64,000 nt of DNA, from the NCBI RefSeq assembly GCF_000143415.4, contig NW_003314294.1, positions 1,044,416-1,108,415 of the forward strand, in the 5' to 3' direction. Position numbers and translations under genes: made by a program. Each line of letters opens with the position of its first letter. Within the stretch, counting starts at the first letter, position 1. Shown here in pieces: positions 9,456 through 55,706 of the stretch. Below the pieces are notes generated by a model. That model did no database searches and was not told the origin of the DNA. It saw nothing but the letters and a program-made list of their open reading frames with translations. This DNA comes from Selaginella moellendorffii (Eukaryota; Plantae; Lycopodiophyta).

Positions 9456-9459
9456 GTTT

Positions 9460-17000: not shown

Positions 17001-17755
17001 TTCGACACACTCAAGGCGGCTTTCAGTTCTGCTCCTGTCTTGATCCATGCTGATTCCTCACAACCTTTCTTCATCGAGGCTGACGCCTCCAACTTTGCCA
17101 TTGGTGCTGTGCTGTCTCAACTCGGAGCAGATCACGAACTTCATCCGGTCGCTTTCCATTCTCGGAAATTCCAGCCTACGGAGATCAATTACGAAATCCA
17201 CGACAAGGAGCTCCTTGCCATCGTGGATTCCTTTGGAGAGTGGCGCCGTTTCTTGGAGGGGGCGAGCCATCAAATAACAGTCTGGACGGATCACAAAAAT
17301 CTCGAATACTTTGCCACTTCCCGAGTTTTAAGCTGTCGTCAAGCAAGGTGGGCACAATTCTTGAGTTGGTTTGACTTTGTTATCAAGTACAGACCTGGAA
17401 AGCTTCAAGGCCTTCCTGATGCTCTTTCAAGGCGCTCCTATCTCAATCTCAGGCCTGGTAATCCTGCCTTCAATCAACAAGATCAAGTTATCCTCGGTCT
17501 TGATCGGCTTCAAGTTATGGCAATTTCCCTGGCCCCTCAGGACTCCTCCTTGATGGATGCAATCAGAAACGATCTTCAATCCGATGATCTCGCTAGCTAC
17601 ATTTTCCCCCATCTTCAGGCTGGACACCCAGTGACTCCCGACTACCGGCGATTTGACGAGTTCGAGTTCTTAGATGGCTTATTATACCGTGGGGAGCAGC
17701 TTTATGTTCCTAAAGGTGATGCTTGAAGGTTGGTTCTGATGGCGTGCCACGATAA
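14091..17755 (+). mobile_element. Ty3/gypsy copy 2 (partial LTR, gag, protease-RT-RNaseH, start of integrase; TGA stops at 16512 and 17724)
   Basis: gag 14398-15369 with degenerate CCHC; pol 15276-17726 with LLDSGA, IYLDD, EADAS, DKELLAI, TDHKNL; breaks off at the 'ACHD' zinc-finger start. Confidence 0.93.
15342..15426 (+). promoter_or_regulatory. -1 programmed ribosomal frameshift signal (G GGA AAC slippery site plus predicted H-type pseudoknot)
   Basis: Heptamer at 15342-15348 is in gag phase and pol is in the -1 frame; 6-nt spacer; 11-bp stem 15355-15365/15376-15386; loop AGGAGCT (15368-15374) is complementary to AGCTCCT (15420-15426). Confidence 0.8.
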
Positions 17756-22755: not shown

Positions 22756-22984
22756 TGCAAAATTTTGCACCCCAGCAGGCAGGCAATGCTGGCAATGTTG
22801 CTCGAGGAATCCTCATCCTGATATTTAGGGGTGCAAGCGGCATACAAGTTGCTAGTGTAAACAGAACGTGGAAACTCTAGGACATTGACAGGAATGAAAT
22901 GTAACAACAATTGAGAGCGTTGCAGCGTGGGGAAGACGTGGATGCGAGCCTCCAATTCAACATAGCACCACACACCAAATAGAC

Positions 22985-25900: not shown

Positions 25901-27747
25901 GAGAGTCAGCTACTTATCGCAAGCAGCTCAGGATGCTCAAGACTCCGGCCTTAAATTGCTGTCGGTGATGGAGCAGTTTTCTCGTGAACCACGCACAGTC
26001 TGTGCAGCTCTTCAATCACCAGAAGCAGGACAGTGGAAGGCCGCTATGCAGGAGGAGTACAACTCCTTGATCCGTAACAACGTTTGGGAGCTTGTTTCTC
26101 TTCCACCAGGCAGGAAAATCGTCAGTACCAAGTGGATATTCAAGCGTAAATTGGATGCCACTGGAGCAGTGACTAGATATCGAGCTCGCTTTGTAGCGAG
26201 AGGATTTAGTCAAGTACCTGGCGTGGATTATTCTGAGACTTTTTCGCCAGTGGCAAAAATGTCTTCTATACGAATTATTCTACGTCTTGCAGCATATTGG
26301 GATCTGGAAGTGCATCAGCTTGATATCAAGACAGCGTTCTTATATGGCGAGCTTAAGGAGGAAGTCTATATTTCTCAGCCAGATGGATTTATTGTTCCAG
26401 GACAGGAGCAGAAAGTATGTCGACTTAAGCGCGCACTATATGGCTTAAAGCAGTCTCCTAGAGCATGGTACGAGCACATGGACAGGTTTCTTTCTTCCAT
26501 TGGCTTTAAGAAGATTTTTGCGGATAGCAACGTGTATATTTTTCGCTCTGGAAACGCATTTTCTATTTTAGCGCTATATGTCGATGATAATATTATGGCA
26601 GCACGTCCGCCAACAATCGTCAGCTATTTTGAGCGACAGTTTTTATCTCAGTTTGAGATTTCCGCGACTGGACGTCTTTCTTATTGCCTTGGGATCCAGG
26701 TGCTTCGGGACAGAGAAGCAGCAGTCATCGAGCTCTCTCAAGCACATTATGTTGAAGAAATTTTGCAGAAGTTCAACATGCAAGATTGCAAGCCCGTGGC
26801 AACGCCAATGGATCCAGGTCTTGTGCTGTCTATTGAGCAAAGTCCCAACTCTGAGGAGGAGAAAGCAGTGATGGCGAGAGTTCCATATCGACAAGCAGTT
26901 GGATGCCTTATTTATCTAGCCATCAGTACCAGACCAGACTTGGGATTTGCAGTTGGAGCAGTCTCAAGATTTCTTGAGAATCCAGGAGAAGTGCATTGGA
27001 GCGCTGTTAAACGAATTTTCAGGTATTTGCGAGGAACAGCAGGATATCGACTGAGCTACAGAAGCAGTAGCAGTGTGTCTAGCAGCAGTGGGAGCTCCAG
27101 GAGTATGCAACTTGTCGGCTTTACAGACTCAGATTGGGCTGGCGACAAGGATACCAGAAGATCAACCTCAGGATATCTTTTCTTCCTGGAAGGTGGACTT
27201 GTCAGCTGGAGCAGCAAGCGACAAGCAATCACAGCACTTTCATCCACCGAAGCTGAATATATTGGTGCAACAACAGCAGCTCAAGAAGCGAGGTGGCTTA
27301 CAGATTTTCTGGAGCAGATTGGTGTTCCAGTGCAGCAGCCAGTGACTTTGTTTTGTGACAATCGAAGCGCGATCGAGTTGTCGAAAAATCCGAAGTTCCA
27401 TGGCCGCACCAAACACTTCGAGATAAAGGTACATTTTATTCGAGAGCAGGTTCTAGCGAACAGAGTGCAGCTGAGCTATGTTTCGACGAAGCAGATGACA
27501 GCAGACATTATGACAAAAGCTTTGAGCAAAGATAAGTTTCAACAACATCGTGAAGGTATGAGCGTTATAGACTCTCACGGCTGAGTGGGAGTGTAGATAG
27601 CCAGCCTGGAGTCTAATCCAAGGTGGCAAGAGATTTATGTGGACGCTGAAATGAGCGGACACAAGACTTGTATATATTTACATGGAGAAAATGAAAAGGC
27701 AGTAGGTTAGGGGAAACAGAGTGTGTCGTTTAACTAGAAAACTATCA
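22985..27747 (+). mobile_element. Intact full-length Ty1/copia LTR retrotransposon
   Basis: Identical 156-bp LTRs (22985-23140, 27592-27747; TG..CA), TAGAC target-site duplication, PBS TGGTATCGGAGC (tRNA-iMet type) at 23141, PPT GAGTGGGAG at 27583-27591, single uninterrupted ORF. Confidence 0.97.
23166..27584 (+). CDS. Copia gag-pol polyprotein, 1472 aa
   Basis: CNYCKRVGHYAREC zinc knuckle, WLDTAA protease, HERLGH/CEAC and D,D,E integrase, LYVDD RT, TDSDWAG RNaseH. Confidence 0.97.
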   Translation: MGKTRPRNEQQGYATLDRVTARLQQKKRKGKIRAVEKFIQDQGWSVLEIVEEMTTSKAIPIPLFTGTDFENWAKEISFLFLRDNCLRIVQGTEPKSAASDEDEWQVRNDKAVSTMGIGLGKLHHHHLDITKTAEENWTALKNVFGNQASAEISKVELKSKLFGLKMAADETPAAFLGRLKSVLSQLSSLGEAVTENDKRAVLLNALVRPEFKSLKTMLKNSTKTFIEMQAALINEEEPAEDQTPADTNTTTALFVNSKQTKNSPGKGGSASSFKAGASNTASSFRASNVGDSNSRERKGECNYCKRVGHYARECRDRLAGRPRGLGRKNARTGYTNQSRALMVRAIPEPVFVQQQDQDVIWLDTAANMHMTGRREAFLNLRKISTGRQVGLGDKSLLSVVAVGTVQVQLASGELRDIRNMYFVPGLAYHLFSIGAASDNGFYFIFNAKQAIMRDEKTDQAVAYGQRYSGLYKLDATMVVPDKQPDRALSTRASNLQLWHERLGHVHEDALKAVSRDQAHAQEFEFTGKLEFCEACVLGKQARTSFPKFSESKSSQPLELVHTDVCGPLHVQSHRGMRYFLTFIDDYSRYTVVRLLAKKSEVLDHFKVYKASAENLLGKQLKTLRSDRGGEYKSRNFMKLCNESGIQQQFTAPDSPAQNGVAERMNRTLMESARSMLIHAGMPLSFWAEAINTATYIRNRVPTQPLADIPYRLWTGKQASLRHLRVFGCIAYAKVSNSHRRKLEPKSIPCIMVGYCLETKAYRLYNMATRSILISRDVKFDENSLYKHRYKNPETPSYVLFYEEDVSRASGPQPQVHGQQQPRVQQLQPQQQVEAEQQPPLEPSPVTPEQEDEAVTPFDDGFIFSGLFDDPEEEESPPGQPQAQPSTPGAARSQQEADPIIPGKPFRTITRSGRVSYLSQAAQDAQDSGLKLLSVMEQFSREPRTVCAALQSPEAGQWKAAMQEEYNSLIRNNVWELVSLPPGRKIVSTKWIFKRKLDATGAVTRYRARFVARGFSQVPGVDYSETFSPVAKMSSIRIILRLAAYWDLEVHQLDIKTAFLYGELKEEVYISQPDGFIVPGQEQKVCRLKRALYGLKQSPRAWYEHMDRFLSSIGFKKIFADSNVYIFRSGNAFSILALYVDDNIMAARPPTIVSYFERQFLSQFEISATGRLSYCLGIQVLRDREAAVIELSQAHYVEEILQKFNMQDCKPVATPMDPGLVLSIEQSPNSEEEKAVMARVPYRQAVGCLIYLAISTRPDLGFAVGAVSRFLENPGEVHWSAVKRIFRYLRGTAGYRLSYRSSSSVSSSSGSSRSMQLVGFTDSDWAGDKDTRRSTSGYLFFLEGGLVSWSSKRQAITALSSTEAEYIGATTAAQEARWLTDFLEQIGVPVQQPVTLFCDNRSAIELSKNPKFHGRTKHFEIKVHFIREQVLANRVQLSYVSTKQMTADIMTKALSKDKFQQHREGMSVIDSHG

Positions 27748-29699
27748 TAGACCATTTGCAAGGTTGTGGCTCCTGTACCTTGTGCTGGTACAATGTCAGT
27801 ATCAATAATCAAACGCCTTTTCTTACCAGCCTGACCTGAACTCTCAAGTCAAGTAGGCCGCTTCACGTGGCCGGCAAATAGTTGCTCAAAGACAAAAGCC
27901 ATACTGTTTGAATAGCGGTGCACGTGCATTGAATTTGGCCTGCAAATAGTTGCTGAGCAGCATCACTTGTTGGAATTAATATGATCTAAATAATACATTG
28001 CGTGTGCATTTTATTCTGATATGTTATACATACATCTTTTAACTTGCATTTGCACAAGCCTTATCATCACACATAACGTGGGCATTGTATGAGAACCTTT
28101 TTAAAATTAAAAGTGCATAATAATTAAAAAATGTATATATAGTTTGTCTAAATGTTTCAAATCTTTTAGGAGTATTTATTATAAAAATATTTGTTCATAA
28201 AAAATAAAAATATTTGTTCACATATTTGTTTATTTGTTCTATGTATTCAGTAAAGAACTTTAGTTTTTTTAAATCAATTTAAATAAGTTACCCATTTATA
28301 GCAAATAAAAAAGTTGACACTCATTATCTCAAACTCTAGGCATATTAGACACATTCACAACAATTGATATTAGACTTGAGGGAAGCGATACAATTATGAA
28401 ACAGCAGGATTATGAAAACTATTACAAGTAAAACAAGGTATACCTGTAAAAATTACAACTAATAATTAATGATAATTGAACAGGACAAAGACACCATGTG
28501 CAAGCCTGATTCTGTTGAGAACGAGGAGTTGGAAGCATGCATCTAAACCAGGTTCCATAGTCTCTCTCTGTTTGAATTTATCTTATGTACAACCCACAAA
28601 AAGAAGGGGGATTGTTGTCATTTTTCACTGTTGTTTCTTGTTCAACTTGCTCCACCTGCACAGGGACCTTGCTATGATTCCCTACCCTAAACTAAGTCAA
28701 AATGATTTGTTAATTGTGTTGATTCATTTGTTTTTCTTAGCTTTGCATATTGTAAACTGCGTGCACTCACCCTTGATAACTCAGCACAGATTCAATGCCA
28801 ATCAGAACTAGTTTTCACAATGGATTGCCGGTCAATATGGTCAACATAACAGTCGAAATTCAAAGGTGATACTGATTCTTGAAAATTCTTTCCCCTTAGA
28901 TAATCTTTCAACTAACAAACTTGTCTAAATCAAAATACATTGAAGCTACCATACATCCATTGATAATTACATTTTTCCATGTTTCCTTGATTTGAAGACA
29001 GCTATATAACTGTTTGGTTTGCCTAAGCAAACGTGTACACCTCTGAGCGATCATTTGTGAAGCAGCACACCACCAAGTGTCCTTGCAAAACCAAGCAAGG
29101 GCCTTATAAAATAAGTAATTGCCCCTTTGTTGGATCCGGATAACGTCACTCAAAAGAATCCCAAGTTAAGTGTTATAACGATGAGTGAACGAGGCCGGGT
29201 GCGAAGGTCTACGAGATAGTGGTTGGGTCAAATGTTAAGCTAGACCCTAGTCCACAAAGGACTGTGGACCAATGGGTCTTTTCTGGGACATGTCTACTTG
29301 GAGAATCACCAAAGGACTGATAAAAGAATAATCTTGGAGGGGTTATATAAAAAGTAGCAGGGTCGCTACCTACAGCAGAATCATGCATGTTTTTTGGTGG
29401 ATAAAACACAAAACCCAAGCAAAGCCGAAACATGGATAAAGTTATTTAAAAACATCTCAAGTTAAATGCTACAACAGGGTGCAAAGGGTTTGAGGGATAA
29501 TGTTTGGGCCAAGTGTTACACCTTTAGTCACTAAATTTCACTAATAACTAGAAAATTGACAATTTTTTGTGCCTTAAACACGACAAAGAAGTTAATGAAT
29601 GTCAAAGTCATGTGGAGCAGGCTACATATAGCTTTCTAGTGTGAAACTGCCGGTCGATGCCAATTCCTAAAACATGAGCTAGAACATTAGCAAGCCAAT

Positions 29700-32650
29700 G
29701 ATAAATGTCGGTATATTTGGTGTTGATGTCAAGATTTAAATTTTCAACTTGAATCCATGGTTGCTTTGTTGTTGAGAGCATCTATTTGTTAACCTAAACT
29801 ATTTGTTGTAGACTATGAAGATATGAGCACCTGCTTCAGATTCTCCTTGTCACGCTTTTTCCAAGTTGAAGGCGTGGATTTTACGGAGAGGAGTAAATTT
29901 CTACTTGAAGATCCATTTGGTGGAGACCACTCTTCTATCTTCTAGCAAATCTGCCAAACTCCAAGCATTGTTCTTCATAAGAGTATAATACTTTTCTTTC
30001 ATTGATCCGCGCCATTGGGTAGCCTTCCGACTATACATTGCTTCAAGTATTGTGCGAGGTTCTGGAGTCATCCATCGCTCACCTCCTGCAAAGTAGAAAT
30101 CAGCTCCACTGTTGGCAGGCATTCTTCCTCAAAGTCGAGGTGCTGGCAGACTCCAAAGCCTTGCGAGAGAGATAACTTATGTTGGTTGAGTGAGAATGAG
30201 AAGGAGAGGAGTGAGAAGGTTCAGGAACCAATTGGAGGCTAGGAGGAGCTGATCCGTTGAAGACATTGTTCAGTACCACTGGTGAATCTGGAATAGGATC
30301 TGGTACTAGAGGCAATGGTGAACCTCACTTGAGTGTTTTCTGGAATAGAGAGAGGCTCCCCGTCAAGTAGCAGCAGCCAAGATGAGTTAGTAGAGGAATC
30401 ACAAGAGATGATACCTCTAGAATGTGAAGCGAGAAGATGCTTGTACAACTTTTGCTCATCAAACAAACCATCTATGTTGTGCTTGATGGTGCGGGATTCC
30501 CAATAGGCTTTCATTTGCTCACTGTAGCCAATGAGGACACAAAAAGAGCTCTTCGGGTCCAATTTCTGTCACAAATCATCAGGAACATGGGTGATGGAGA
30601 TGGCTCGCTGCATGCTCATGCATGCTAGCATGCCTGGATCTTTCTGAGGCAAAGCAGTAGCCTATATTCAGAATCAGTTACCGAGTAAGAGCTTCTCCTA
30701 TAATATACCTTACGATATGAGGACTGGGAAGAAACCCAGCATTGCTCACTTACGCATCTTTGGTTGCGCTGCCTATGAGGTCCTATTCATACGCTTTGCA
30801 ACTCCATTCTGTTGCGGGGTGTACCAACAAAACTAGCACTGGATCCCTTCCCGTTCATAATAACAAAAGAATTTGTTAGACAAGTACTTGTCACCACTGT
30901 CGTAGTGAAGAACTTGAAGCCATAGACCTGTTGCCACCTCAACCTTTGCTTTGAAAAGCTAGAACAGCTGCATGAGTTCAGATTTATGACGCATCAGCTT
31001 CACTACCACCTTCCTTGTATATATAGGTAGCAACATGCATGGGTACGCAAACATCCAAATGAACCAATGGTAACGCCTGTGTACAACAAATCTTGAGAAA
31101 GATTGCCGAGAAAGAACCACTTCTGGTAACACTTGAGCAAGCTCCTTGATTGATGCCATAGTTGAAGAGAAACTGCCTCCTTGGCTGCTAAAGTGGCACT
31201 TGTTGGGATCACTGTGACGTTTAGCTTATATACCCACATCTACTGCCACTGGCAACCTCCTCCTATCGCTGGTCCAGTAACTAACAGCTGCTGCGACTGA
31301 AGATCACCTGATAGCCCTTGTCTATGATGTCACTGACAGACAACAGAATCTGGCTTATTCTTGGCACAAAATAGACCTCTGCAATCCTTCAGAGCTCTTC
31401 TGTATGAACGATTAGGGAACCTTCAGCCACTGGTATGGCTGCTTTGTTCACTGTTCAACCTGGAGATAGAAAGTGAGGCATATCCAGCACTTCAATTTGA
31501 GGTGTCATGTGTAGTGTGGCTCTAGAATCGAGCCATACTTCTGTTGCTCTGCCTTGGAGATTTCTTGCGCCCCCGCCCCATAAGCAATTGTTGCGCTAAC
31601 TGTTGCTGCATTGATTGTCTCGAGCAAAATGTCCACAATGGTTGCAAATACCTTTCTACGTCCATAGCCGGTCATGCTAGAAGGTGAGGCGCTGCCTGCG
31701 CGATTTTGTTGCTGCCTATTATCTCTTCTTGAACAAGGAGGACGAGTTGATGGTTTCCTTTTCTCACCACTAGGGCTGTCGCTTGAGAACTCGAGGCCTT
31801 CCCATGATCGGAAAACTTTTCCTTTAAGATTGCAGCCTGCATCTTCTGACAATCAAGGCCATCGATGTTATTGAGATAGTCCATAATGAATCAAACTTTG
31901 CATGCCCTCGCATAGCATTCAGGAGTAATGCTTGCAGATCCACATCTGCTACAGTGTCACCCAGACTGGTGATTTGTGATCGCAAAGTTTTCATCCTGCC
32001 CAAGAATGTGGAGATAGGCTGTTCTGGAGAAAGCTTTAGGCCGAAGAACTCAATCTTCAAATCCACCTTCATCACTGAGCACTAGCACGACTGCCCAACG
32101 TGTTGTGTAGTAGTGCCCAATTATCTGTTGCAGGCTTCTCGATATCTAGATGATGGTGAAAATCACGACCTAGCCCCATCCCCATTGATGACAAGGCTTT
32201 GCCATTTCGGAGTCCCCACTTCAACGCTGCGTCAGGATCTTATGGTTGTGGCTCTTTTCAATGTCACACAAGAAAATAAACTCCATCTCCTTGCTCCAAT
32301 TGAAGAAGTCTCGCCCATCATAGATGGGGATTAGAATTGTTTTCATGGTGTTTAGGGACGAAGCTGCAGGTTTCTAGATGCTCAAAGACACCCTTATGAT
32401 CTTGTGACTAACATCTTTTGCATTTCTTTTCCTGCAATCTTAAGTTGATGCTGGCTATTGCTAGCTTGATCCTCTCTTGAAGATCAATCTTCTTCTTCTT
32501 CTTGGCCATCCCTGGCCAAACCTGCTCCGATACCATGACAGAGAATGCGGAGAGATTTTCATTGCTGGATATGTAAAAGCTAAAAGTGACCCTAGACCTA
32601 GGGTGACTTGGATGATGAGTAGATGATGATGAGGCTCCCACCTAAGCAAC
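29700..32650 (-). mobile_element. Degenerate Ty1/copia with gag remnant and PBS, related to the intact copia family
   Basis: PBS TGGTATCGGAGC on the - strand at ~32524-32535; gag fragment 'KVDLKIEFFGLKLSPEQPISTFLGRMK' resembles the gag of 23166; degenerate IN/RT. Confidence 0.8.
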
Positions 32651-38127: not shown

Positions 38128-38136
38128 ATGTTTTAA
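38128..38136 (+). promoter_or_regulatory. SAMDC 'tiny' uORF (ATG TTT TAA) overlapping the small uORF start by 1 nt
   Basis: ATGTTTTAATG: the last A of the stop is the A of the small uORF ATG, the hallmark plant SAMDC arrangement. Confidence 0.9.
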
Positions 38137-38353
38137 TGGCGTCGACGCGTGATTCTAGTAAATCTAAACGCGACTCTGTCCAATACGAGTCTCCTCTCGG
38201 CTACAAGATTGAGGACATCAGGCCTGACGGTGATATTGAAAAGTTCCGCTGCGCTGCCTACTCAAACGTAAGCTCCTTTGTTTTCTTTGCGAGAAATGCG
38301 TCGCGAGCTAATTCGTCTCTTCTTCTTTGCAGTTCGTCCGAAAACCATCCTGA
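38136..38353 (+). CDS. SAMDC 'small' conserved-peptide uORF, 50 aa; exons 38136-38267 and 38333-38353
   Basis: MASTRDSSKSKRDSVQYESPLGYKIEDIRPDGDIEKFRCAAYSN|FVRKPS* matches the plant YEAPLGYxIEDxRPxGGIxKFxSAAYSN..KPS consensus; 65-nt GTAAG..TGCAG intron after YSN. Confidence 0.93.
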
Positions 38354-38575
38354 TACCCCCCAGAAAGAAGAGCCAGTAGAGTAGGCTAGGGCCTTCCCCT
38401 CGTCAAATCCTTTGCTTGGAGTCTCCTTTACCTCTTGGAGCTGGTCTGCGGCATGCTGCACGGTGGCAGATCAGCTCCCTGCTCTCGGGAGCAGCATTCT
38501 TCCCGCTAGCTAGCTAGCTCTTTAGCCGGTCTCTCCTCTCTTTTTTCTCCCCTCCGTCTCCTCTCACAAGCCAAG

Positions 38576-41047
38576 ATGGGTGTCTCTTTCATTCCCGCTG
38601 ATGAAGTCATGGAGCCTGTTGTTGCCAGTCCTGGGTTTGAGGGGTTTGAGAAGAGGCTTGAGGTGGAATTCTGGGATCCTCTTGGTTTTGCCAATCCGAG
38701 TGGTCTGCGAGCAATCCCCCGCAATGAGATTGACACCATGCTGTCAGCGGCCGAGTGCACTATTGTCTCTGCTTTGAGCAACAGTCAGTTTGATTCCTAC
38801 GTGCTGTCTGAGTCAAGCCTCTTCGTCTATCCTTCCAAAATCGTCATCAAAACCTGTGGAACCACGCAGCTCTTGAAGGCCATCCCCCTGCTTCTCAAGT
38901 CGGCCTCGTTTATCTCCCTGGAAGCCTGCCGCTGCAAGTATAGCCGAGGAACTTTTATCTTTCCCAGTGCCCAGCCTTCGCCTTATGGAAACTTTAACGA
39001 GGAGGTGGTGATCCTGGAGAAGTACTTTGGTCACCTTGGAAACGGAGGCAAGGCTTGCGTCATGAGTGACGCCTCTAAGATGCACAACTGGCACGTTTAT
39101 GTTGCTGCGTCGGAAGTGGCCCCCTTGAGCTCTGAGACATACACAATGGAGATGTGCATGACGCAGCTTGATCGCTCTTCGGCAGCTCTCTTCTACAAGT
39201 CGCCGTTCTACCGGTCAGCTGCTGACATGACTCTCCTGTCCGGCATCCGGAACCTCCTGCCTCACTCGGAGATATGCGACTTTGCCTTTGATCCCTGCGG
39301 CTACTCAATGAACAGCGTCGAAGGCAACGCCCACTCGACCATACACATAACTCCGGAGGATGGTTTCAGCTACGCAAGTTTCGAGACCATGGGTTACAGC
39401 CCGAGCATGCTCGACTTGGGAAGCTTGGTGGACAGAGTGCTCGGCTGTTTCAAACCGGCAGTTTTCAGCATCTCGCTCTCGACGGCTGGACTCTGCCACT
39501 CACAGGACGCTGGGTCCTGGGGGGTGCCGGTTTGTCCACGAGGCTACGTGTGCAGTGGGACTACTCGCCATGAAATGCCCGGGGGGAGCTTCGTGGTGTA
39601 CCACACTTATACGAGGATCTTAGGTGGCGACTCGACAGTGATGCCGCTTGCTCTGTTCCCGGCACTGGAGAAGGTGGCGAGCAATGGTTACAAGAGCAAG
39701 AACAGCGAAGCATCTTTGAAGCCGTTTCTGTACGGTGTGCAGCCCTTACGTGAAAGTGGTGGGGCGGAGGTCATCGGTCCTACTGCCAGGGACATGGATT
39801 CATTCATCAGGAAGAAGATCCAGTCCACGGGCCGAGAGGATGCGTTCTATGTTCTTGACTTGGCAACTGTTACTAGGCTGTGGAAGATTTGGAAGTCGGC
39901 CATGCCGAGAGTTCACCCCTTCTACGCGGTCAAGTGCAACCCCGACCCGCAGCTCCTGTCCATGCTGGCGGCACTGGGAGCCGGTTTCGACGTTGCGAGC
40001 AAGGCAGAGCTGGAAGCTGTGACACAACTCGGGGTGGCGCCACGAAACATTATATTTGCGAATCCCTGCAAGCTTCCTTCGCATATCACTGAAGCTGCTA
40101 AGGCGGGGGTGGTGTACACGACGTTTGATTCCGAGGGAGAGCTCTACAAGCTTAAGAAGTACCATCCACAGGCGGAGGTTCTCCTGAGGTTCCGTGCCGA
40201 CGACACCGGTGCTCGCTGCCCGCTGGGCGTCAAGTATGGTGCCGAGTGGGACGAGTGCTATCATCTGCTGGAGGTGGCCAAGACGCTGGGCATCAAAGTC
40301 GCAGGTGTGGCCTTCCACGTCGGGAGCGGTGCCTCGGACGTGAATGCCTTTGCGGAGGGCATCAAAGCCGCGAGGAAGCTGTTCGACATGGCCGAGAGCT
40401 TGGGTCTCCCGAGGATGACAATGCTGGACATCGGTGGCGGGTTCGTGTCGGATGGAGGAGCCGGGGTCAAGTTCGCGGCCGCGGCGTACGAGATTGGCAA
40501 CGCGCTGGAGGAGCACTTCCCGCGGGAGACGATGGCGGACGTGAGGATCATCGGCGAGCCGGGCAGGTTCTTCGCGGAGGAGGCCTTCAGCCTGGCGGTG
40601 CTCGTGTTTGGCTGCCGGGTCCGGAGGCGCGAGGAAGGCAACAAGACGGTGGTTGAGTACTGGATCAACGATGGCATCTACGGCTCCATGAATTGCTTGC
40701 TGTACGACCACGCAACGCTCTCGGTACGGGCGCTTCCAGTGGCGAGCAGTGGCGGTGGCAGCAGTGGTAGCAGCAGCGGCAGTGATTGCGAAAGCTCGTC
40801 CGAGGATGAGGAGGACGATGCGCCGCTGCTGGACGTGGAGCTCCATCCCTCCATCATCTTTGGGCCGACATGCGATGGACTGGACACGGTGCTGAGCGAT
40901 GTGTGGCTTCCGCGGCTCCAGTGTGGGGACTGGCTCGTGTTCCCTCGCATGGGGGCTTACACCAAGAGCGCTGGATCCAGCTTCAATGGCTTCGCGGTTC
41001 CAGACGCTACGTTCTACGTTCACTGTGGAGCAGCGCCAGAGATGTGA
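38576..41047 (+). CDS. SAMDC-ODC: Bifunctional S-adenosylmethionine decarboxylase - ornithine decarboxylase fusion, 823 aa, no introns
   Basis: SAMDC (~aa 1-347): GFEGFEKRLE, YVLSE|SSLFV (E79/S80 autocleavage), IKTCGTT, FDPCGYSMN, TIHITPEDGFSYASFE. ODC (~aa 400-820): PFYAVKCNP (PLP Lys453), FDVAS, IFANPCK, FHVGSG, LDIGGGF, EPGRFF, NDGIYGSMNCLLYDHA, GPTCDGLD (Cys766), GAYT, FNGF. Confidence 0.95.
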   Translation: MGVSFIPADEVMEPVVASPGFEGFEKRLEVEFWDPLGFANPSGLRAIPRNEIDTMLSAAECTIVSALSNSQFDSYVLSESSLFVYPSKIVIKTCGTTQLLKAIPLLLKSASFISLEACRCKYSRGTFIFPSAQPSPYGNFNEEVVILEKYFGHLGNGGKACVMSDASKMHNWHVYVAASEVAPLSSETYTMEMCMTQLDRSSAALFYKSPFYRSAADMTLLSGIRNLLPHSEICDFAFDPCGYSMNSVEGNAHSTIHITPEDGFSYASFETMGYSPSMLDLGSLVDRVLGCFKPAVFSISLSTAGLCHSQDAGSWGVPVCPRGYVCSGTTRHEMPGGSFVVYHTYTRILGGDSTVMPLALFPALEKVASNGYKSKNSEASLKPFLYGVQPLRESGGAEVIGPTARDMDSFIRKKIQSTGREDAFYVLDLATVTRLWKIWKSAMPRVHPFYAVKCNPDPQLLSMLAALGAGFDVASKAELEAVTQLGVAPRNIIFANPCKLPSHITEAAKAGVVYTTFDSEGELYKLKKYHPQAEVLLRFRADDTGARCPLGVKYGAEWDECYHLLEVAKTLGIKVAGVAFHVGSGASDVNAFAEGIKAARKLFDMAESLGLPRMTMLDIGGGFVSDGGAGVKFAAAAYEIGNALEEHFPRETMADVRIIGEPGRFFAEEAFSLAVLVFGCRVRRREEGNKTVVEYWINDGIYGSMNCLLYDHATLSVRALPVASSGGGSSGSSSGSDCESSSEDEEDDAPLLDVELHPSIIFGPTCDGLDTVLSDVWLPRLQCGDWLVFPRMGAYTKSAGSSFNGFAVPDATFYVHCGAAPEM

Positions 41048-41295: not shown

Positions 41296-42975
41296 TCAAA
41301 CGACTCCAGCCGCGACTGAGACATACGACGGAGGATCTTGGGGCTTGAGCGCCAGTAGCTCTTTTGCTGCTTGTTCCGCAAGGTCTCGGTTGCTGTAACG
41401 TTTGCATGCCGCGAGCAGCGAAGCCCACTCCACGTCGTTTGGAAGGAATGGCATGGTTTGGATGAGATCCATGGCGTCGTCGAGCTTTCCGGCCCGTCCC
41501 AGCAGATCGACCATGCAGCAAAAGTGCTCCCTCAGCGGCTCCACCTCGTGGTCCGATTGCATCGCCACGATATGGTGGCGGGCGTCGTCCACGCTTCCCT
41601 TGTGGGTGCACGCCACGAGAATGGCCGCGAAGGAGACCGCGTTGGGTCTCACCCCGGTCTGCATCATCTCCCGGAAGAGATGGCCGGCCACGTCGCTGAA
41701 TTCGCCGCTGTGGGCGAGCGCTCCCACCATCGCGTTCCACGACACGAGATTCCTCTCGGGCATTTGCTCGAACGTGAGCTTGGCGTCGCTCGTGGCTCCG
41801 TTTCGAGCGTAGCCAGCGAGGAGGGTGTTCCAGGAGACTGTGCTCCACTCGGGCATCCGATCGAACGCGAGCTTGGAATCCAAGACCCGTCCCGCCAGAG
41901 CATAGGCTCCCAGCAGCGTCGTCCATGTCACGACACTCTTGGGCTCGGAAACTCTATCAAACAGTGCCTTTGCTTGCGAGAGTTTTCCACTCACGGCACA
42001 CGCCTGAATCATCGCGTTCCACGAGCAGATGTTCTTGTCGGGGATGGAGTCGAAGGTGGCTTTGGCTCGATCGTAGTCTCCTGCATTTGCATACACCGCC
42101 AGCAGCGTCGTCCACGACACAACGCTCTTTTCCGGGATGGATTCGAACAAGATTCTCACTTCGTCGTGGGCTTCCGCGTCCGTGCATGCCTGCAGCATCG
42201 AATTCCAAGACACCACGCTTCTGCAGGGCATTCTCTCAAACACTGCTTTCGAGAGATCCAAATCTCCGGTTGCGGCACTCGCTGCGAGCATTGCGTTCCA
42301 GCACACAGAATCCCTTGAAGGCATTTCAACCAGACAATTCCAAGCATCGCCCATCTTGCCGTTTTGTGCATAGCCAGTCAACATAGCCGTCCATGAAACA
42401 ACATTCTTCTCAGGCATACTGTCAAAAATGGCTTTTGCCGCTTGCAAATGCCCTTTTCCGGCAAATGCAGTAACAATGATCGTCGACGACACTGCACACC
42501 ACCTTGGCATTCTATAGTACACTAAATTTGCATGAAAGAGTTCATCATTCTGTGTGAAACCTCGTATTAGTGCGTTCCACGACACGTTGTCTCGCTTTTT
42601 TAGGCCCCTAAAGAGCTGCTCTGCCTTGTAAATTTGCCCACCTTGGGCATATGCTGTTATCATCGCGTTTGAGGCCACCACGCTGCGATCCGGCATTGTG
42701 TCGTAAACCTCCTTGGCCTTGTCCATGTCGCCGTTGCTTGTGTAGGCACCGAGCATGATACTCCACGAGAAATCGTTCTTCGGATCGATGGCATCGAACA
42801 CCTGCCTTGCCTCGCTTGGGCTCCCACACTTGCCATACATTTGCACCAGGAGATTTGCCAGGAAGCGATTGAGGCATTGGCGGCTCTGGATTCGATCGTG
42901 AACACGCCGCAGCTCGTCCAGGTTCTTGATGTTCTTGAGAATCCCTGCAAAGAATGCCTGCCCTGAGGTTCCCAT
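41296..42975 (-). CDS. PLS-class pentatricopeptide repeat protein, 559 aa, ending in a partial E domain
   Basis: About 14 tandem PPR motifs (VVSWTAMLTGYAQNG etc.), HFCCMVDLLGRAGKL, MPFLPNDVEWASLLAAC. Confidence 0.93.
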   Translation of the reverse strand: MGTSGQAFFAGILKNIKNLDELRRVHDRIQSRQCLNRFLANLLVQMYGKCGSPSEARQVFDAIDPKNDFSWSIMLGAYTSNGDMDKAKEVYDTMPDRSVVASNAMITAYAQGGQIYKAEQLFRGLKKRDNVSWNALIRGFTQNDELFHANLVYYRMPRWCAVSSTIIVTAFAGKGHLQAAKAIFDSMPEKNVVSWTAMLTGYAQNGKMGDAWNCLVEMPSRDSVCWNAMLAASAATGDLDLSKAVFERMPCRSVVSWNSMLQACTDAEAHDEVRILFESIPEKSVVSWTTLLAVYANAGDYDRAKATFDSIPDKNICSWNAMIQACAVSGKLSQAKALFDRVSEPKSVVTWTTLLGAYALAGRVLDSKLAFDRMPEWSTVSWNTLLAGYARNGATSDAKLTFEQMPERNLVSWNAMVGALAHSGEFSDVAGHLFREMMQTGVRPNAVSFAAILVACTHKGSVDDARHHIVAMQSDHEVEPLREHFCCMVDLLGRAGKLDDAMDLIQTMPFLPNDVEWASLLAACKRYSNRDLAEQAAKELLALKPQDPPSYVSVAAGVV

Positions 42976-48355: not shown

Positions 48356-49119
48356 ACAACACCGTGGCCTTACGCGAGCCACCTGGGTACTTTCTGCCCC
48401 TGGCCGTGTTTGCCAACACTGCCACTGGATCGAGACCCACAGGCCCGACCACTAAGTCCCACGGTCCTCTGGGACTTCCTCACCACACGACTGTGTCCTT
48501 GGTCACTACCCCAGAGGACTGCTCCTCTTCCTTTCCACAGTCTGGGCCTTTGGGACAACATTTCGGAACGCCTAAGTTCATGTTTTCCCTTTGTAAGGAT
48601 CAACCTGGCTCATTCTTGACCTCTGCGTGGGTTTTCTTGTCAGGCAAAATGCTGCTGCGTGGACCATTGCTTGGATCTCGTAAAGCTGTGAGGTAAGGTT
48701 ATTTATTTTTATATTACAGGCTCGTCCAAAACTCGATGTAAGAGATACCGATTCTTTATTGGATCAACGACTGGGAGCATCGGGTATGAGCGGGTTCCGT
48801 TGAGCCACACCAGGTATCCAAGTAGGTAGTGCCACCCACACTTGGACTGGGAGCATCGGCCAGTCGATCTCCCGGGGGAACTAGAGCCGGCTCTTGAACA
48901 CTTCACCAAGCTACCCCGCTTGTCGGTCTGTGTTCACTCTAGTCTTGGACTTCCCAGTGGGCAGCTCATCACCCAACACTGGGTCCGGCCTTCCTGGGCC
49001 AAACTGGCCTTTCCTGGCCAAACTGGCTCCACTGCAGTCCTCCCCCTACTATACTTTTGGAGCTCACCAAACCCCCCAGGGTCTGGGAGACGAACGCTTT
49101 GGGCTTTCACCCTCTCAGG

Positions 49120-49740
49120 CTCCGGACTCGGACTCGGACTCGGACTCGGACTCGGACTCGGATTCGGACTCGGACTCGGGCTCGGGCTCGGTCTTGGCCT
49201 CAGCCTCGGTCTCGGTCTCGGTCCCGATCTCGGTCTCGGTCTCGGTCCTAGTCTCGGTCCCGGTCTCGGTCTCGACTTCGGACTCCATCTCGGACTCCAT
49301 CTCAGACTCCATCTCGGGTCCATCTCGGACTCCATTTCGGGTCCATCTCGGACTCCATCTCGGACTCCATCTCGGGTCCATCTCGGACTCCATCTCAGAC
49401 TCCATTTCGGGTCCATCTCGGGTCCACCTCGGACTCCATCTCGGACTCCATCTCGGACTCCATCTCGGGTCCATCTCGGGCTCCATCTCGGACTCCATCT
49501 CGGGTCCATCTCGGGTCCATCTCGGACTCCACTTCGGACTCCAACTCGGGTCCATCTCGGACTCCACTTCGGACTCCAACTCGGGTCCATCTCGGACTCC
49601 ACTTCGGACTCCAACTCGAGTCCATCTCGGACTCCACTTCGGACTCCAACTCGAGTCCATCTCGGACACTACTTCGGACTCCAACTCGAGTCCATCTCGG
49701 ATACTACTTCGGACTCCAACTCGAGTCCATCTCGGACACT
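49120..49740. repeat. GGACTC hexamer and derived 12-mer (GGACTCCATCTC-type) tandem array inside the LTR
   Basis: Directly visible; produces stop-free ORFs in most frames. Confidence 0.95.
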
Positions 49741-52700
49741 TCCACGTGTCATGTGTTGGTCCTTTTGGGTCCCTTTTTGGAGCCTCGCTTTTTGCTCGCT
49801 TCGTGCTCGTTCCTCTTGCAGTTCGTTGGGAGTTCCACTCCCGCTCTTGACTTTTCAAGTCGGAGCTTTTGGTCCAAACGTGTTACGCTCGTTTGGCTCT
49901 CGCTTCAGCCACTACCACGTGGCACCCTTTCCGGCTCCACTTTGGGGCCTAGGGATTTTGTGTCTCACAACTCCACCACCTATAGACGAAGTTCGATGTC
50001 CTCATCGAACGGTAAACCATTTTGTAAAGTAACACTCGCATGTGTTACCATTTCCATCTTTGGCACCTAGCCAATATTTATCAATGGTTTGACATTGAAG
50101 GCTCACCATGCCTTTTGCATATGCCTCAATGGTTTGACACCAAAGGCTCACCATGCCTTGCCTATCCTCTAAGGAGGGTGGTCTCTCCAACTTAGAGACT
50201 GATTGGACCACATATAGTGGTTCTCTCCTTTTATTGGTTTAGTTCTTGCTAAACCTCTTAGAGACCCTTATCTAAGTCAATCCCACTACTCCTTCTCGAG
50301 TAGTCTCAATTTCCATCGATATAACCTTTGCACTTTGGAACTTTGAATTTTGACTTCTTGGAGTCAATTTCCTAGGTGTCTTCGACACCTTGCCTTGCAC
50401 CTTTTGTGCAACTCCACTTCCCATCCTAGGAAGTTCTCTACTCGAGGGCACCATCATCCTCTCTTCTATTTCGTGCCAAAGTTCCAGTTATCATACTTTG
50501 TGCTAGGGCTGTTCATGGCCCTATCATTTGGCTACCTTACCGCTCCCTCCCTTGGAGCTTCCACTTTCGCCAAATCGGAGCATTTCGGAATCCTTCCTTG
50601 GAAACACACTTCCTTTCCCGCAACTTGTTAGCGTCCAACACATTAGTGTTCCTCGCCTAACTTTGTCACTTGGATTCCTTCCAAGGGATTCCACGGCCCT
50701 ATCTTGGCCACTCATCTTTTGCTCCTATCCGTTGATTGTTGCACCAAGCAACATTGAATCCCTACCTCCCTCCTTGAGGTATTGTTTCGGTTCCATAGCA
50801 AAGACTCTTCTTTGCCAAGTCCGGAGGATGTTCACCCCTAGTACGTCTCTTTAGCATCTTCTGCTATGGGCTCTATCCACGGCCCAACTTCATGACCCTC
50901 CCATGGGTCTTTTATAGAGACTATTTTCCTCGGACTCACTATGCCATCGCACGGACATAGTTTATTTCCCTTAGGTGCTCTTCCCACTTGGTTATCACGA
51001 CCAAGCCACACCACCTTAAACAGTTCAATTTCAACATTTTGAACCAGGAACTTCATTCCTTAGCCAACCAAGGACCTTGTCCTTATCTGGCCATAAGATC
51101 ACCTAGTGATTTCACCTTGGCACCTTAACAGAGTTGCTAAGAGGTACTTGGTTTTCTAGACCTTCAAGTTGTTGACTATAACCCCAGGGGCATCCCCCAC
51201 ACTTGGCGGTGCACCCAAGCCAGCCCTTACGGCCAAGGGTTCATAGCAACTGAGATTAGGTGTCCCCATCTCACTCACCACGACCTTGGTGCCACTTGCA
51301 CCAAAGCGTTCAAGTTAGATATGCTGAGCTTTCACACTAAGCAATCTAACCGTGCATCACGACTCCGAGGCATCCCTCGCTTGGCGGTGTGCCCAAACCA
51401 ATCTCCCCACTGAGAGTCCATGACCACCGAAATATGAGTGTCCTCATATTCCAAACCATCACCACGCCCTAGTGATTTGGGACTCGAACCCAAGCACTAG
51501 AGGGTCGGGACTCGAACCCAACCTCCGTATATGCATCTACGGACGGCATCACACAAGATGCCTGGCGTGACTCCCCACGCCGGTGCACCAACTTATTTTT
51601 ATTTTTAAAGCGCGCTACAGATCACAGCTTAGGAACCTAGTTCCTCCACACTGCCAAGTCCTCTCACTTGACATGTCCATGATCATGCATGGGCTCCTCC
51701 ATGCTTGGCCCCATGGCCCACCCTTTTTGAAGTTATCACCTTCAACTAGGGTATTTGTTCCCCCGACGTGCCAATCTCGCTTGGCAAGTCCTCTGACCAC
51801 TGTAACATGGTTCCTGCATAAGCGTGAAAGTCCTTGACCATCGACTTTCGTTCAAAGCCCTCTCCTTGAACACTCGGGAACTACTTCCCTAACCTTGATA
51901 GCCTTGCCTCATGGCAAGCTTCAAAACCACGCTTCTGCTGCGCCACTCTGATTTCGCGCGTTCCATGAACCATTTACACTTGGCCTTTCTAGGTACTAAG
52001 CTACCTAGAATCGTCTTTGGGAACCTTGAAGGAACTCTGTCCCTCAGCTTGCTAAGGCTTCCCTTTTTGCAAGCCTTCCAAATGCCACATAGTCTAACAT
52101 GGACAATTCCATATTTTAGACTTTCCATGGCATCACGGTTGCTAGTGGCAACACCCTCGAGCCCCCACTTGATTCTCCACTCCCAGCTGGCATAACCAAC
52201 CTTGGTTATGCCCTTTGATTCCTACGGTTCGGTTCTATCCCCTTACTTCTTGCTTTTTGGCTTCACACCTTTCCTTTGGTCATTCTCCTCCAGACCAGAA
52301 GGATAGCTTTGCACTTTCTATCATGCTTTAGCAAGTATTCTTAGGGATGAACCTACCCAATAGCCTAGGGAGTGGTTCTTCAATCCGGGTATGCTCACCT
52401 TATAATCCCACACACTGGGATTACATTGTTGCTTATGGGCCTTTACATGCCCATCACTAGCCTTGCCAAAATTCCATTTTTGGCTTTGTCCAACTCGGGT
52501 AGACAGTCCTCTCCTGTCTCCGCAACCTTGAACATTTGGATAGCACCTTCTATCCATCATTCGCTAGGGACTTAGTCCCTTGGGCTTTATCCATTGCCCT
52601 CGCGACATCAAACACCACCTTCTGGTGTTCTAGAGTGTTCGGGTGTCCCAATGATGGCTTTCTTGACAATGAGTATTTCCTTTTATGACATTGACTTACT

Positions 52701-55073
52701 ATATCGCAACACAAGCAACTTATCCCCCGTAAGGGTATATCCAACTTCCCTATGCTATTAAGAAGTCTTGGGTAGCTACCTTCTACCCGTTTAACCAGTT
52801 ATTTTGCATCTCTTGCTTAGTTGCCTCATAATTGTCAAGTCCTACAACTCATTGCTTGGTGCTTTCACACCTCCATCATTATCTGGGTCACCACACTCCA
52901 ACTGCATGCTCTGCAACTTAGGCTATGCTATTCCCATTTCCATTGGGATTCCTTTGGCAAGGGGTTCTCATGAACCCACCAATATAGCCTCAAGGTATCA
53001 CACCTTGGCATATTTGGTGTCTCCACACCATCGGCTCCACGAGCCTACCTCTATGACATTTCCCCTTCGTGTCTAAGTCTTTGCCAAGACCAACACCGCT
53101 CTTTCTCATGCCAACCATCCGTTAGCACTGCACTATAGAGGTCACACACAACTTTATGTCAAAGTTGTTTTCTTCTGGGAACACCTTTCCCATAACTTTA
53201 GCATGGCACATTTTGCCATCGAGGAGATACCCTCTGTTCTCATCCTTGGATCCTATGATCCCCCCCCATCCTTTGTGGGGTACAACACACCTCAGTCCAA
53301 ATGCTTCCATCAGTCCTTTTAGGACCATCCGTTGACTCTACTTGAGTCATCCAGCAGTTTTGGACTTGGTTAATCCACAGACCCGTAAGGTTCTACTTGT
53401 GAGGCACTAGCTCACTGGAATACACTTCTTGCATTCCTGTCCTACTCAAAAGGACTATTTTCACAAGTGTTACTCCGACACTTGATTTTGTTCTCTGGGG
53501 GCCACCTTTGCCCCTGAGGACTACTTGTCCATGTGATGAGAACACCAACTCATCCACTTAATACACCCCCAACTCCTTGGGTTGTTCCAGCATTTATTAG
53601 AGGTAGCCCCGGCTACCTTTTCAAGGACTTGAGTCCTCTTCCGTATTTGACCTCCCACGGTCATTACTTCTTGTCTCACATTCATGAGCACCAACATCAA
53701 CTATATGAGGAAAATCTTGTGACTCCTTTATTGCTTTGGAGTTTTTATCTTTCCCGTGATCCCAACTGTAGTTGTTTACCACAACTACATTAGCCAGTTT
53801 GCTAAGTCAAACGCTCATCTGGATCACATCCTCAACTCTTTGAGGAAAACCATATACTGTTCCCAAGATCCCAAAGTCGTTCCATTATTGGCCCTTTTCT
53901 ATCCACCACCTTGTCTACAAGTTCACACATGAACTGTAATGGAGAGCCATATCTTCCCGACCTGCTACTCCTCAAGGATAGGCCCACTTCTCGGACCTTC
54001 CGTTGCCAACACCAGTGGTGATATACTTGAGCACCAATAAAAGTCGGACTAAGGAACAGCTCCGATACCAAATTGTAAGCGACTAAATTTTCCATTCTAC
54101 TTTAGTCACTTAACCACACCTCTGACCACTTGGAGAAGTCTCATTCACAACCTCCATAAGTCCAATCTAGGACTTGGGACTTGCTAGCCCCGAGAATGGC
54201 ATCCATGCCACTCAACATTTGCACTTGGTCCAAGTGCTCCACATGTCCGATCCCATGACCGACACTCAAAGGTACCACCGACATAACAGCCCGTTACGCT
54301 AAGGCCATGCCCAATCACCTTTGCCACACTGGTAGTCCAATACCACTTGCATCACCGTCTTGGCTCTCCAAGACTAGGCAAACCATCCGTGAGTGGTCAT
54401 CTCAGATCCACTCCTTAGCATCCTTAGGATGCCCACCGACAAGGGGAATAGCCTTCCCCAATATCCCTCTGTCAGTCCCCACTAAGTCCCTTTCTGCCCC
54501 TGGCCGTGTTTGCCAACACTGCCACTGGATCGAGACCCACAGGCCCGACCACTAAGTCCCACGGTCCTCTGGGACTTCCTCACCACACGACTGTGTCCTT
54601 GGTCACTACCCCAGAGGACTGCTCCTCTTCCTTTCCATAGTCTGGGCCTTTGGGACAATATTTCGGAACACCGTGGCCTTACGCGAGCCACCTGGGTACT
54701 CTCCTCGCCTTCTGCCCTTGGGTGCTCTAGCCATGGGCTTAGAGCGGGTTCCGTTGAGCCACACCAGGTATCCAAGTAGGTAGTGCCACCCACACTTGGA
54801 CTGGGAGCATCGGCTAGTCGATCTCCCGGGGGAACTAGAGCCGGCTCTTGAACACTTCACCAAGCTACCCCGCTTGTTGGTCTGTGTTCACTCTAGTCTT
54901 GGACTTCCCAGTGGGCAGCTCATCACCCAACACTGGGTCCGGCCTTCCTGGGCCAAACTGGCCTTTCCTGGCCAAACTGGCTCCACTGCAGTCCTCCCCC
55001 TACTATACTTTTGGAGCTCACCAAACCCCCCAGGGTCTGGGAGACGAACGCTTTGGGCTTTCACCCTCTCAGG

Positions 55074-55706
55074 CTCCGGACTCGGACTCGGACTCGGACT
55101 CGGACTCGGACTCGGATTCGGACTCGGACTCGGGCTCGGGCTCGGTCTTGGCCTCAGCCTCGGTCTCGGTCTCGGTCCCGATCTCGGTCTCGGTCTCGGT
55201 CCCAGTCTCGGTCCCGGTCTCGGTCTCGACTTCGGACTCCATCTCGGACTCCATCTCAGACTCCATCTCGGGTCCATCTCGGACTCCATTTCGGGTCCAT
55301 CTCGGACTCCATCTCGGACTCCATCTCGGACTCCATCTCGGGTCCATCTCGGACTCCATCTCAGACTCCATTTCGGGTCCATCTCGGGTCCACCTCGGAC
55401 TCCATCTCGGACTCCATCTCGGACTCCATCTCGGGTCCATCTCGGGCTCCATCTCGGACTCCATCTCGGGTCCATCTCGGGTCCATCTCGGACTCCACTT
55501 CGGACTCCAACTCGGGTCCATCTCGGACTCCACTTCGGACTCCAACTCGGGTCCATCTCGGACTCCACTTCGGACTCCAACTCGAGTCCATCTCGGACTC
55601 CACTTCGGACTCCAACTCGAGTCCATCTCGGACACTACTTCGGACTCCAACTCGAGTCCATCTCGGATACTACTTCGGACTCCAACTCGAGTCCATCTCG
55701 GACACT
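55074..55706. repeat. Second copy of the LTR tandem array, one 12-bp unit longer
   Basis: Directly visible; the equivalent ORFs are 4 aa longer (322 vs 318; 251 vs 247). Confidence 0.95.

Follow-up and report, generated by a model that had tools for sequence, protein, structure and literature searches.

In the textbook account of plant polyamine synthesis, ornithine decarboxylase (ODC) and S-adenosylmethionine decarboxylase (SAMDC or AdoMetDC) are separate enzymes. The AdoMetDC/ODC of Plasmodium falciparum, described as unique, consists of two chains of ~170 kDa with an N-terminal AdoMetDC, a hinge and a C-terminal ODC (PMC3253432). The benefit proposed for that fusion is a coordinated and equimolar supply of putrescine and decarboxylated AdoMet, not substrate channelling (PMC3253432). 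Bacteria and diatoms have AdoMetDC-aminopropyltransferase fusions, in which an N-terminal AdoMetDC is joined to a second enzyme of the polyamine pathway (PMC6356823, PMC11107197). The biology of the two upstream open reading frames (uORFs) of plant SAMDC has also been described: in plant AdoMetDC mRNAs the uORF pair represses translation at high polyamine levels (PMC2811004). Here we describe a SAMDC-ODC fusion gene in a 64,000-nucleotide stretch of Selaginella moellendorffii DNA (contig NW_003314294.1, positions 1,044,416 to 1,108,415; referred to below as the window, whose positions are used throughout, on the plus strand unless marked otherwise). We consider it very likely that this gene is the Selaginella orthologue of an ancient, vertically inherited green-lineage gene for a bifunctional SAMDC/ODC. 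Both halves are placed vertically in the trees, stand-alone SAMDCs are nested among fused ones and the seed-plant ODC is a paralogue, and the fusion is therefore best read as ancestral in the green lineage.

The coding part of the gene is a single open reading frame (ORF, 38576..41047) of 823 codons plus a stop codon. It has no internal stop, as an earlier note made from the sequence had reported. The ORF list, Pfam and an existing gene model all support it as the main coding sequence (CDS), a single exon for the predicted SAMDC-ODC proenzyme. The AdoMet decarboxylase domain (aa 20-345, 38633..39610) covers profile positions 3-342 of 343 of PF01536 (SAM_decarbox, E 1e-103) and matches potato SAMDC 1MHM (E 1.6e-83). 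The predicted local distance difference test (pLDDT) score of this domain is mostly >85. The ODC domain (aa 401-823, 39776..41044) contains Orn_Arg_deC_N (PF02784, aa 430-667, E 1e-72) and Orn_DAP_Arg_deC (PF00278, E 1e-15) and matches Trypanosoma brucei ODC (TbODC) with E 1.5e-103. Searches of solved structures returned potato SAMDC 1MHM, human AdoMetDC, T. brucei ODC and human ODC, and Foldseek gave target TM-scores of 0.87-0.95 for the ODC domain against the human and T. brucei enzymes; a Chlorella-virus arginine decarboxylase is among the related folds of the ODC half. Domain matches this strong cannot have arisen by chance. The gene is real, and its sequence indicates that it very probably encodes a two-in-one polyamine enzyme.

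Catalytic residues were assigned by alignment to solved enzymes, human 1JL0/1MSV and potato 1MHM for the SAMDC half and T. brucei 1F3T for the ODC half. All motifs listed in the earlier note were found at the residues given there, opposite the catalytic residues of the solved enzymes, and none is damaged. The SAMDC set is complete: F21/E22/E25, YVLSE79/S80S, C94 (KTCGTT), S244 (CGYSMN) and H257/E261 (TIHITPE). E22, E25, S80, C94, S244 and H257 correspond to human AdoMetDC E8, E11, S68, C82, S229 and H243, and they are invariant in an alignment of 42 fused homologues (Viridiplantae, Cyanophora and Diphylleia). The predicted autoprocessing codons E79-S80 (38810..38815) align with human E67-S68 and are likewise invariant. 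In the ODC half, K453 (PFYAVKCN), D472, E478, R538, H581 (FHVGSG), GGGF 620-623, E661/R664 (EPGR), D711 (YDHA), C766-D767 (GPTCDG) and Y795 are all present. K453, D472, E478, R538, H581 and G620-G622 correspond to K69, D88, E94, R154, H197 and the G235-237 loop of TbODC, and E661, R664, D711, C766, D767 and Y795 to E274, R277, D332, C360, D361 and Y389. The predicted Schiff-base lysine for pyridoxal phosphate (PLP), K453 (codon 39932..39934), is invariant in the 42 homologues; the predicted active-site cysteine C766 (codon 40871..40873), expected to be contributed by the partner subunit, is at least 90% conserved, and the adjacent D767 is invariant. Across this set, each residue of the two active sites is either invariant or conserved at 90% or more. 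The ODC half keeps the YDHA motif, whose Asp and His we take to be typical of ornithine-specific enzymes.

Between the two domains lies a spacer of ~55-66 aa, in agreement with the ~55-aa linker first estimated; in the homologues it measures 56-175 aa. The linker segment (aa 351-400, 39626..39775) is weakly conserved (12% mean identity across the 42 homologues) and partly disordered. A Ser/Gly/Asp/Glu-rich low-complexity insert in the ODC domain (aa 721-750, 40736..40825) is the longest among the 42 homologues, with 1% conservation, and is lineage-specific. The AlphaFold2 model has a mean pLDDT of 85.5, and both domains are folded with confidence. Low-confidence segments are aa 1-18, 366-387, 728-746 and two very short stretches near the C-terminus; pLDDT falls below 50 at aa 366-387 in the linker and at aa 728-746 in the insert. 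The predicted TM-score (pTM) of 0.56 suggests that the two modelled domains have no fixed mutual orientation.

Like the Plasmodium enzyme, which we compared by its published description, the Selaginella protein has AdoMetDC at the N-terminus and ODC at the C-terminus in one ORF, with both catalytic sets intact. It is also expected to consist of a small beta chain and a large alpha-ODC chain, and its ODC dimer is expected to join two such chains. Unlike the Plasmodium protein (~170 kDa with a long hinge and parasite-specific inserts), it is half the size at 823 aa, with a spacer of ~55-66 aa and one insert of ~30 aa, and its gene is preceded by the tiny and small uORFs of plant SAMDC. The relatives that we used for comparison in the trees, from apicomplexans and a chromerid, fall outside the green clade with both domains. 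The SAMDC domain shares 50-60% identity with potato SAMDC (1MHM) and Arabidopsis SAMDC1, with the same processing site and catalytic residues, and the gene resembles those of monofunctional plant SAMDCs in its overlapping uORFs, leader intron and intronless main ORF. Monofunctional plant SAMDCs stop at ~350-420 aa, whereas the Selaginella protein runs on into a complete ODC. Like stand-alone ODCs (T. brucei 1F3T, human 1D7K and the lysine/ornithine decarboxylase of Lycopodiaceae), the second half is a PLP enzyme of the alanine-racemase fold with all active-site residues; its identity is ~50% to seed-plant ODCs and 40-44% to the human and T. brucei enzymes. It differs from them in having no start of its own, in its position behind SAMDC, in its place in a "fused" paralogue clade and in the ~30-aa insert. 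The AdoMetDC-aminopropyltransferase fusions are not homologous to the Selaginella fusion. Their partner is spermidine/spermine synthase, the next step of the pathway, and their AdoMetDC is of the bacterial class.

A whole-protein search retrieved over 100 full-length proteins in which all three Pfam domains recur, and an exhaustive search of representatives grouped the fused proteins into ~45-50 clusters at 50% identity. Fusions are found in liverworts (Marchantia, Riccia, Calypogeia), ferns (Adiantum, Ceratopteris), streptophyte algae (Klebsormidium, Chlorokybus, Mesostigma, Mesotaenium, Spirogloea, Closterium) and chlorophytes (Trebouxia, Micractinium, Coccomyxa, Bryopsis, Tetraselmis, Cymbomonas, Nephroselmis and others). 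Complete fused ORFs are also present in the de novo transcriptomes of Psilotum, Pteridium, Coleochaete, Netrium and Neomeris (EukProt). Seed plants, mosses and clubmosses are absent from the fused matches, though their stand-alone SAMDC and ODC were readily found; the lycophytes Huperzia, Diphasiastrum and Phlegmariurus have stand-alone ODC and SAMDC. Four Logan contigs (L003-L006), each ~3 kb long and drawn from four sequencing runs, code for a fused protein of 810 aa; it has 58% identity to that of Selaginella and is placed with ferns in both domain trees. Three of them (L003-L005) carry a tiny uORF, a spliced small uORF and the fused ORF on one contig, and are thus mature mRNAs that span the leader and both domains. 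A fused protein of the green type, with 46% identity to that of Selaginella, was also retrieved from the EukProt transcriptome of Leptophrys vorax (P0033), a vampyrellid amoeba that eats algae, and is probably prey contamination and not a gene of the rhizarian itself.

Outside the green lineage, fusions were found in the glaucophyte Cyanophora paradoxa, the CRuMs protist Diphylleia rotans, Chromera velia and two apicomplexans, the gregarine Selenidium serpulae and Cardiosporidium cionae. Plasmodium is therefore not alone in having such a fusion outside plants and green algae. Both domains were confirmed by Pfam in Chromera and Cardiosporidium, and all non-green fusions have SAMDC followed by ODC. 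The same order holds for 161 of the 161 two-domain proteins retrieved. Two ODC-first candidates (P0366 from a frog, and P0370) were rejected as tandem ODC-ODC models lacking a SAMDC domain. No Plasmodium sequence was among the matches listed, and Chromera, Selenidium and Cardiosporidium served as proxies.

The ODC halves were placed in a careful tree of 50 rows; a quick tree with more rows (163) gave the same picture. The ODCs of the green lineage, whether fused or stand-alone, are united in one clade (99/94), within which the streptophytes (99/89) are divided into two sister groups. One group is of stand-alone ODCs, with Klebsormidium branching first, followed by Sphagnum, Lycopodiaceae and seed plants (land-plant part 99/90). 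The other is of fused ODCs: Klebsormidium branches off first and Zygnematophyceae next, followed by an embryophyte clade (98/95) in which the Selaginella protein is joined by those of liverworts and ferns. These positions make the stand-alone ODC found in seed plants, Sphagnum and clubmosses a paralogue whose separation from the ODC of the fused gene goes back to early streptophytes, and Selaginella a species that kept the fused copy. No stand-alone Selaginella ODC was present among the 120 best ODC matches, with the Selaginella proteome in the database searched, so the fusion may be the sole ODC of the species. The ODCs of Chromera, Selenidium and Cardiosporidium group together (100/98) apart from the green clade, and this group joins Cyanophora and Diphylleia weakly (92/53). 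The approximately unbiased (AU) test rejected a topology that unites all fused ODC halves in one clade (p 5e-8). This rejection is expected because of fissions within green plants and algae, and it is compatible with one fusion as well as with several.

The careful SAMDC tree has 54 rows and is rooted on Cyanophora and Diphylleia. Land-plant SAMDCs, 26 of them stand-alone and 10 fused, form one clade (94/96), which is nested in a larger one (98/95) otherwise made up of fused proteins from Klebsormidium and Zygnematophyceae. Fused Mesostigma, Chlorokybus and chlorophyte proteins branch further out, and the SAMDC halves of Chromera, Selenidium and Cardiosporidium sit on long branches outside the green clade. 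Among the land plants, fused genes are intermixed with stand-alone ones, lineage by lineage. The AU test rejected a grouping, chosen post hoc, in which all stand-alone SAMDCs belong to one clade (p 0.0009). On the simplest reading of this topology, the ancestor of land plants carried the fused gene, and stand-alone SAMDCs were derived from it on more than one occasion. The half-by-half phylogenies suggested in the earlier note thus put both halves within the green clade; the part of that comparison concerning Plasmodium had to be made with its myzozoan proxies. One Logan protein (P0378, 761 aa) is discordant, with its SAMDC half among chlorophyte fusions and its ODC half outside the green clade, which could be due to a chimeric history, a secondary-plastid host or a long-branch artefact.

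Decayed ODC sequence is found behind some SAMDCs. Two "stand-alone" SAMDCs from Psilotum nudum transcripts (P0305 and P0494, 526 and 536 aa) keep ~100 residues of the ODC N-terminus (E 2e-24). A Marchantia paleacea protein (P0313, 562 aa; L010, 4001-5689) and a relative (P0306, 551 aa) contain an internal ODC fragment (E 1e-6 and 2e-7). In M. paleacea the remnant keeps the reading frame and aligns collinearly, at 30% identity, with the Calypogeia fusion (residues 634-788), but its HVGSG, GGGF and EPGR motifs are destroyed. These remnants look like intermediates of domain loss and thereby support the direction from fused to stand-alone. No ODC vestiges were detectable in the C-terminal tails of stand-alone SAMDCs from seed plants or Selaginella, and no record was found for the genomic context of the Diphasiastrum SAMDC closest to the Selaginella SAMDC half (P0253).

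The leader of the Selaginella gene provides a further link to plant SAMDC, and the proposal of a plant-type fusion under plant SAMDC uORFs is borne out by a uORF pair at 38128-38353. The tiny uORF (ATG TTT TAA, "MF*[quoted passage not shown]...AAYSN|gt"). An AdoMetDC_leader uORF was called 5' of the fusion in Adiantum and Klebsormidium, and the Chlorokybus and Closterium gene models have a merged-in uORF (PF08132), so the arrangement reaches the streptophyte algae. The fused CDS is a single exon in Marchantia (2580 nt, 860 codons) and in Adiantum (2436 nt, 812 codons), and in Klebsormidium introns must be present, since the gene spans 4279 nt for 864 aa. The description of the Selaginella gene as intron-less is thus correct for the main CDS and incorrect for the gene as a whole, given the 65-nt intron in its leader. 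A third short ATG-initiated ORF (18 codons, 38453-38509) lies between the small uORF and the main start.

S. moellendorffii scaffold GL377598.1 (GCA_000143415.2) encodes the exact protein and already has a gene model for it. A 99% identical 820-aa copy on scaffold GL377694.1, annotated at NCBI as "uncharacterized protein LOC9650684", is evidently the second haplotype of the assembly. That copy is an intact fusion with the same uORF and the same pentatricopeptide repeat (PPR) gene downstream, and PF08132 was called on the small uORF in both haplotypes. The two CDSs differ at 13 synonymous and 8 non-synonymous codons (dN/dS 0.19), with changes in both halves, and by one in-frame 9-bp indel at aa 728-730 inside the low-complexity insert. 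Over a wider region of 8.4 kb the haplotypes are 97.3% identical. An open frame under purifying selection in two independently assembled haplotypes is evidence against a misjoin or a decaying read-through.

Judged from the trees, the fusion is older than land plants and probably older than all Viridiplantae; it has been kept by liverworts, Selaginella and ferns and lost or split in seed plants, mosses and clubmosses. The stand-alone SAMDC genes of land plants were produced from it repeatedly, as the ODC part was lost or decayed. Several points weigh against this account of an ancient bifunctional gene. A number of deep nodes have moderate support (80-90), certain "stand-alone" algal entries lie beside fused genes from their own species and could be truncated models, stand-alone algal SAMDCs are barely sampled, and the grouping rejected in the SAMDC test was a post hoc choice. 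Look-ups of the exact full-length protein matched only the two genome scaffolds and no RNA contig, and we infer the SAMDC and ODC activities, the self-cleavage and the fused Selaginella transcript. Two stand-alone SAMDC paralogues (P0297 and P0311) are present in Selaginella, so the SAMDC half could be redundant. Potato SAMDC is monomeric in the crystal, and the quaternary arrangement considered below is borrowed from ODC and from Plasmodium.

How far back the fusion goes is a separate question. Either a single ancient fusion that was split many times afterwards, or several independent fusions constrained to the same order, may lie behind the present distribution; the trees contain few named stand-alone enzymes from outside the green lineage. 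A tentative and rather doubtful extension is a single very early fusion, no later than the root of Archaeplastida and possibly close to the origin of eukaryotes, with the enzymes of Plasmodium, Chromera, the gregarine, Cardiosporidium, Cyanophora and Diphylleia and the plant gene all as relics. If it were true, the green-lineage fusion would already have been under uORF control, all canonical plant SAMDCs and perhaps the stand-alone plant ODC would be fission products, and the fused form would have given uORF-based polyamine feedback on ODC without antizyme.

The rival that survives best accepts a real fusion and proposes that one half is a catalytically dead regulatory domain, in the manner of the AdoMetDC prozyme of trypanosomatids or the antizyme inhibitor of animals, so that a single activity would be left. 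The stand-alone SAMDC paralogues of Selaginella could then supply decarboxylated SAM, and decay of one domain is seen in M. paleacea, Psilotum and P0306. Those decayed relatives, however, visibly lose their motifs, whereas in the Selaginella protein all catalytic and cofactor-binding residues are present and are (nearly) invariant in the fused homologues. The dN/dS of 0.19, with changes spread across both halves, also speaks for two functional domains, and we regard a dead half as improbable. Slightly less probable still is a connection between the green and the apicomplexan/chromerid fusions by endosymbiotic or horizontal transfer in either direction, in place of deep common ancestry or separate origins. 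It would account for the identical domain order in Chromera, Selenidium, Cardiosporidium and the green lineage, and myzozoans are generally held to have an algal endosymbiotic past, but their fusions lie outside the green clade in both trees (99/94 for ODC) and are nested in no green subgroup. Their long branches make this placement uncertain.

An artefact of assembly or annotation, or a pair of adjacent in-frame genes with separate mRNAs (for example from an internal ODC promoter), is very unlikely. In favour of such a reading, the linker is weakly conserved and the transcript comparisons cover species other than Selaginella; against it stand the open frame in two independently assembled haplotypes, a sole indel that is a multiple of three, fused ORFs on single contigs in the transcriptomes of at least five other species and in four Logan runs, and the collinearity of all 161 proteins. 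Least credible of all, and already contradicted, is the earlier note's view of an independent fusion in one land-plant lineage, convergent with Plasmodium, here taken as a recent joining of neighbouring SAMDC and ODC genes in Selaginella or lycophytes: it fits the separate enzymes of characterised seed plants and of Huperzia, Diphasiastrum and Phlegmariurus, but orthologues occur in liverworts, ferns, all major grades of streptophyte algae and chlorophytes, both halves fall inside fused clades by vertical placement, and the uORF, the intron position and the single-exon CDS are held in common with Marchantia.

For the vertically inherited bifunctional gene we propose the following mode of action. 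The overlapping tiny and small uORFs would sense polyamines and gate translation of a single mRNA, so that one sensor would control both decarboxylases. The fused form would in this way place ODC under the uORF feedback of SAMDC. Plants are not known to have an antizyme that regulates ODC. The proenzyme is predicted to cleave itself at E79/S80, with S80 converted to the pyruvoyl group, into a 79-aa beta chain and a 744-aa alpha-SAMDC-linker-ODC chain, the products also predicted in the earlier note; the alignment of this site with that of the human enzyme is consistent with the prediction. The ODC domains would form an obligate head-to-tail dimer, each active site combining K453 and PLP from one chain with C766 from the other, and the dimer would tether two SAMDC units through flexible linkers. 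Such a complex should couple the output of putrescine and decarboxylated SAM, which spermidine synthase uses as its two substrates. Because neither reaction follows on the other, channelling is unlikely; the probable advantage, as put forward for Plasmodium (PMC3253432), is a coordinated supply of both products.

The Selaginella gene and many of its orthologues are already deposited in GenBank/RefSeq as predicted proteins, and specialists may know the gene. A literature search found no paper on a plant or algal SAMDC-ODC fusion, an absence that is no proof that it is unreported. The value of the finding lies in its evolutionary framing and not in a new kind of molecule. The comparisons indicate the fused enzyme as the green ancestral state, which persists in Marchantia, ferns and Selaginella and from which the familiar uORF-regulated SAMDCs appear to descend. 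The Plasmodium enzyme would be recast as one member of a wide family. A possible route to feedback regulation of ODC without antizyme is suggested, and Marchantia, Selaginella and algae would be tractable, non-pathogenic systems for asking why two decarboxylases are tethered.

The surroundings of the fusion gene are rich in transposable elements. Its nearest neighbour is an intronless, convergent PPR gene of 559 aa (41296-42975, minus strand), whose stop lies ~250 bp from the stop of the fusion; the PPR neighbour in the second haplotype is modelled as 520 aa. An apparently intact Ty1/copia long terminal repeat (LTR) retrotransposon occupies 22982-27748. Its gag-integrase-reverse transcriptase polyprotein ORF of 1472 aa is uninterrupted (23166-27584), and its flanking direct repeats (22982-23141 and 27589-27748) are 99% identical, which suggests a recent insertion. 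A degraded retroelement at 11400-17730 has gypsy-type reverse transcriptase/RNase H ORFs in two tandem copies ~2.67 kb apart with 92-94% identity. Two blocks in direct orientation (2417-3558 and 29855-31024), 27.4 kb apart and 95-98% identical, may be LTRs belonging to one very large, nested element, or else two copies of a dispersed repeat.

Further features of the window lie apart from the gene. A direct duplication (48390-50030 and 54490-56015), ~6 kb apart and 98-100% identical, carries in each copy minisatellite arrays of 6, 12 and 35 nt (units such as CGGACTCGGTCT); its long ORFs have no Pfam match, and GC skew is strongly negative over 48-58 kb. On the minus strand, a 389-aa ORF with an HSP20/alpha-crystallin domain is found at 19276-20442 and a 1036-aa ORF with DUF7869 at 59758-62865. 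At 8001-10000, GC skew is unusually high (+0.33) and AT skew is negative.

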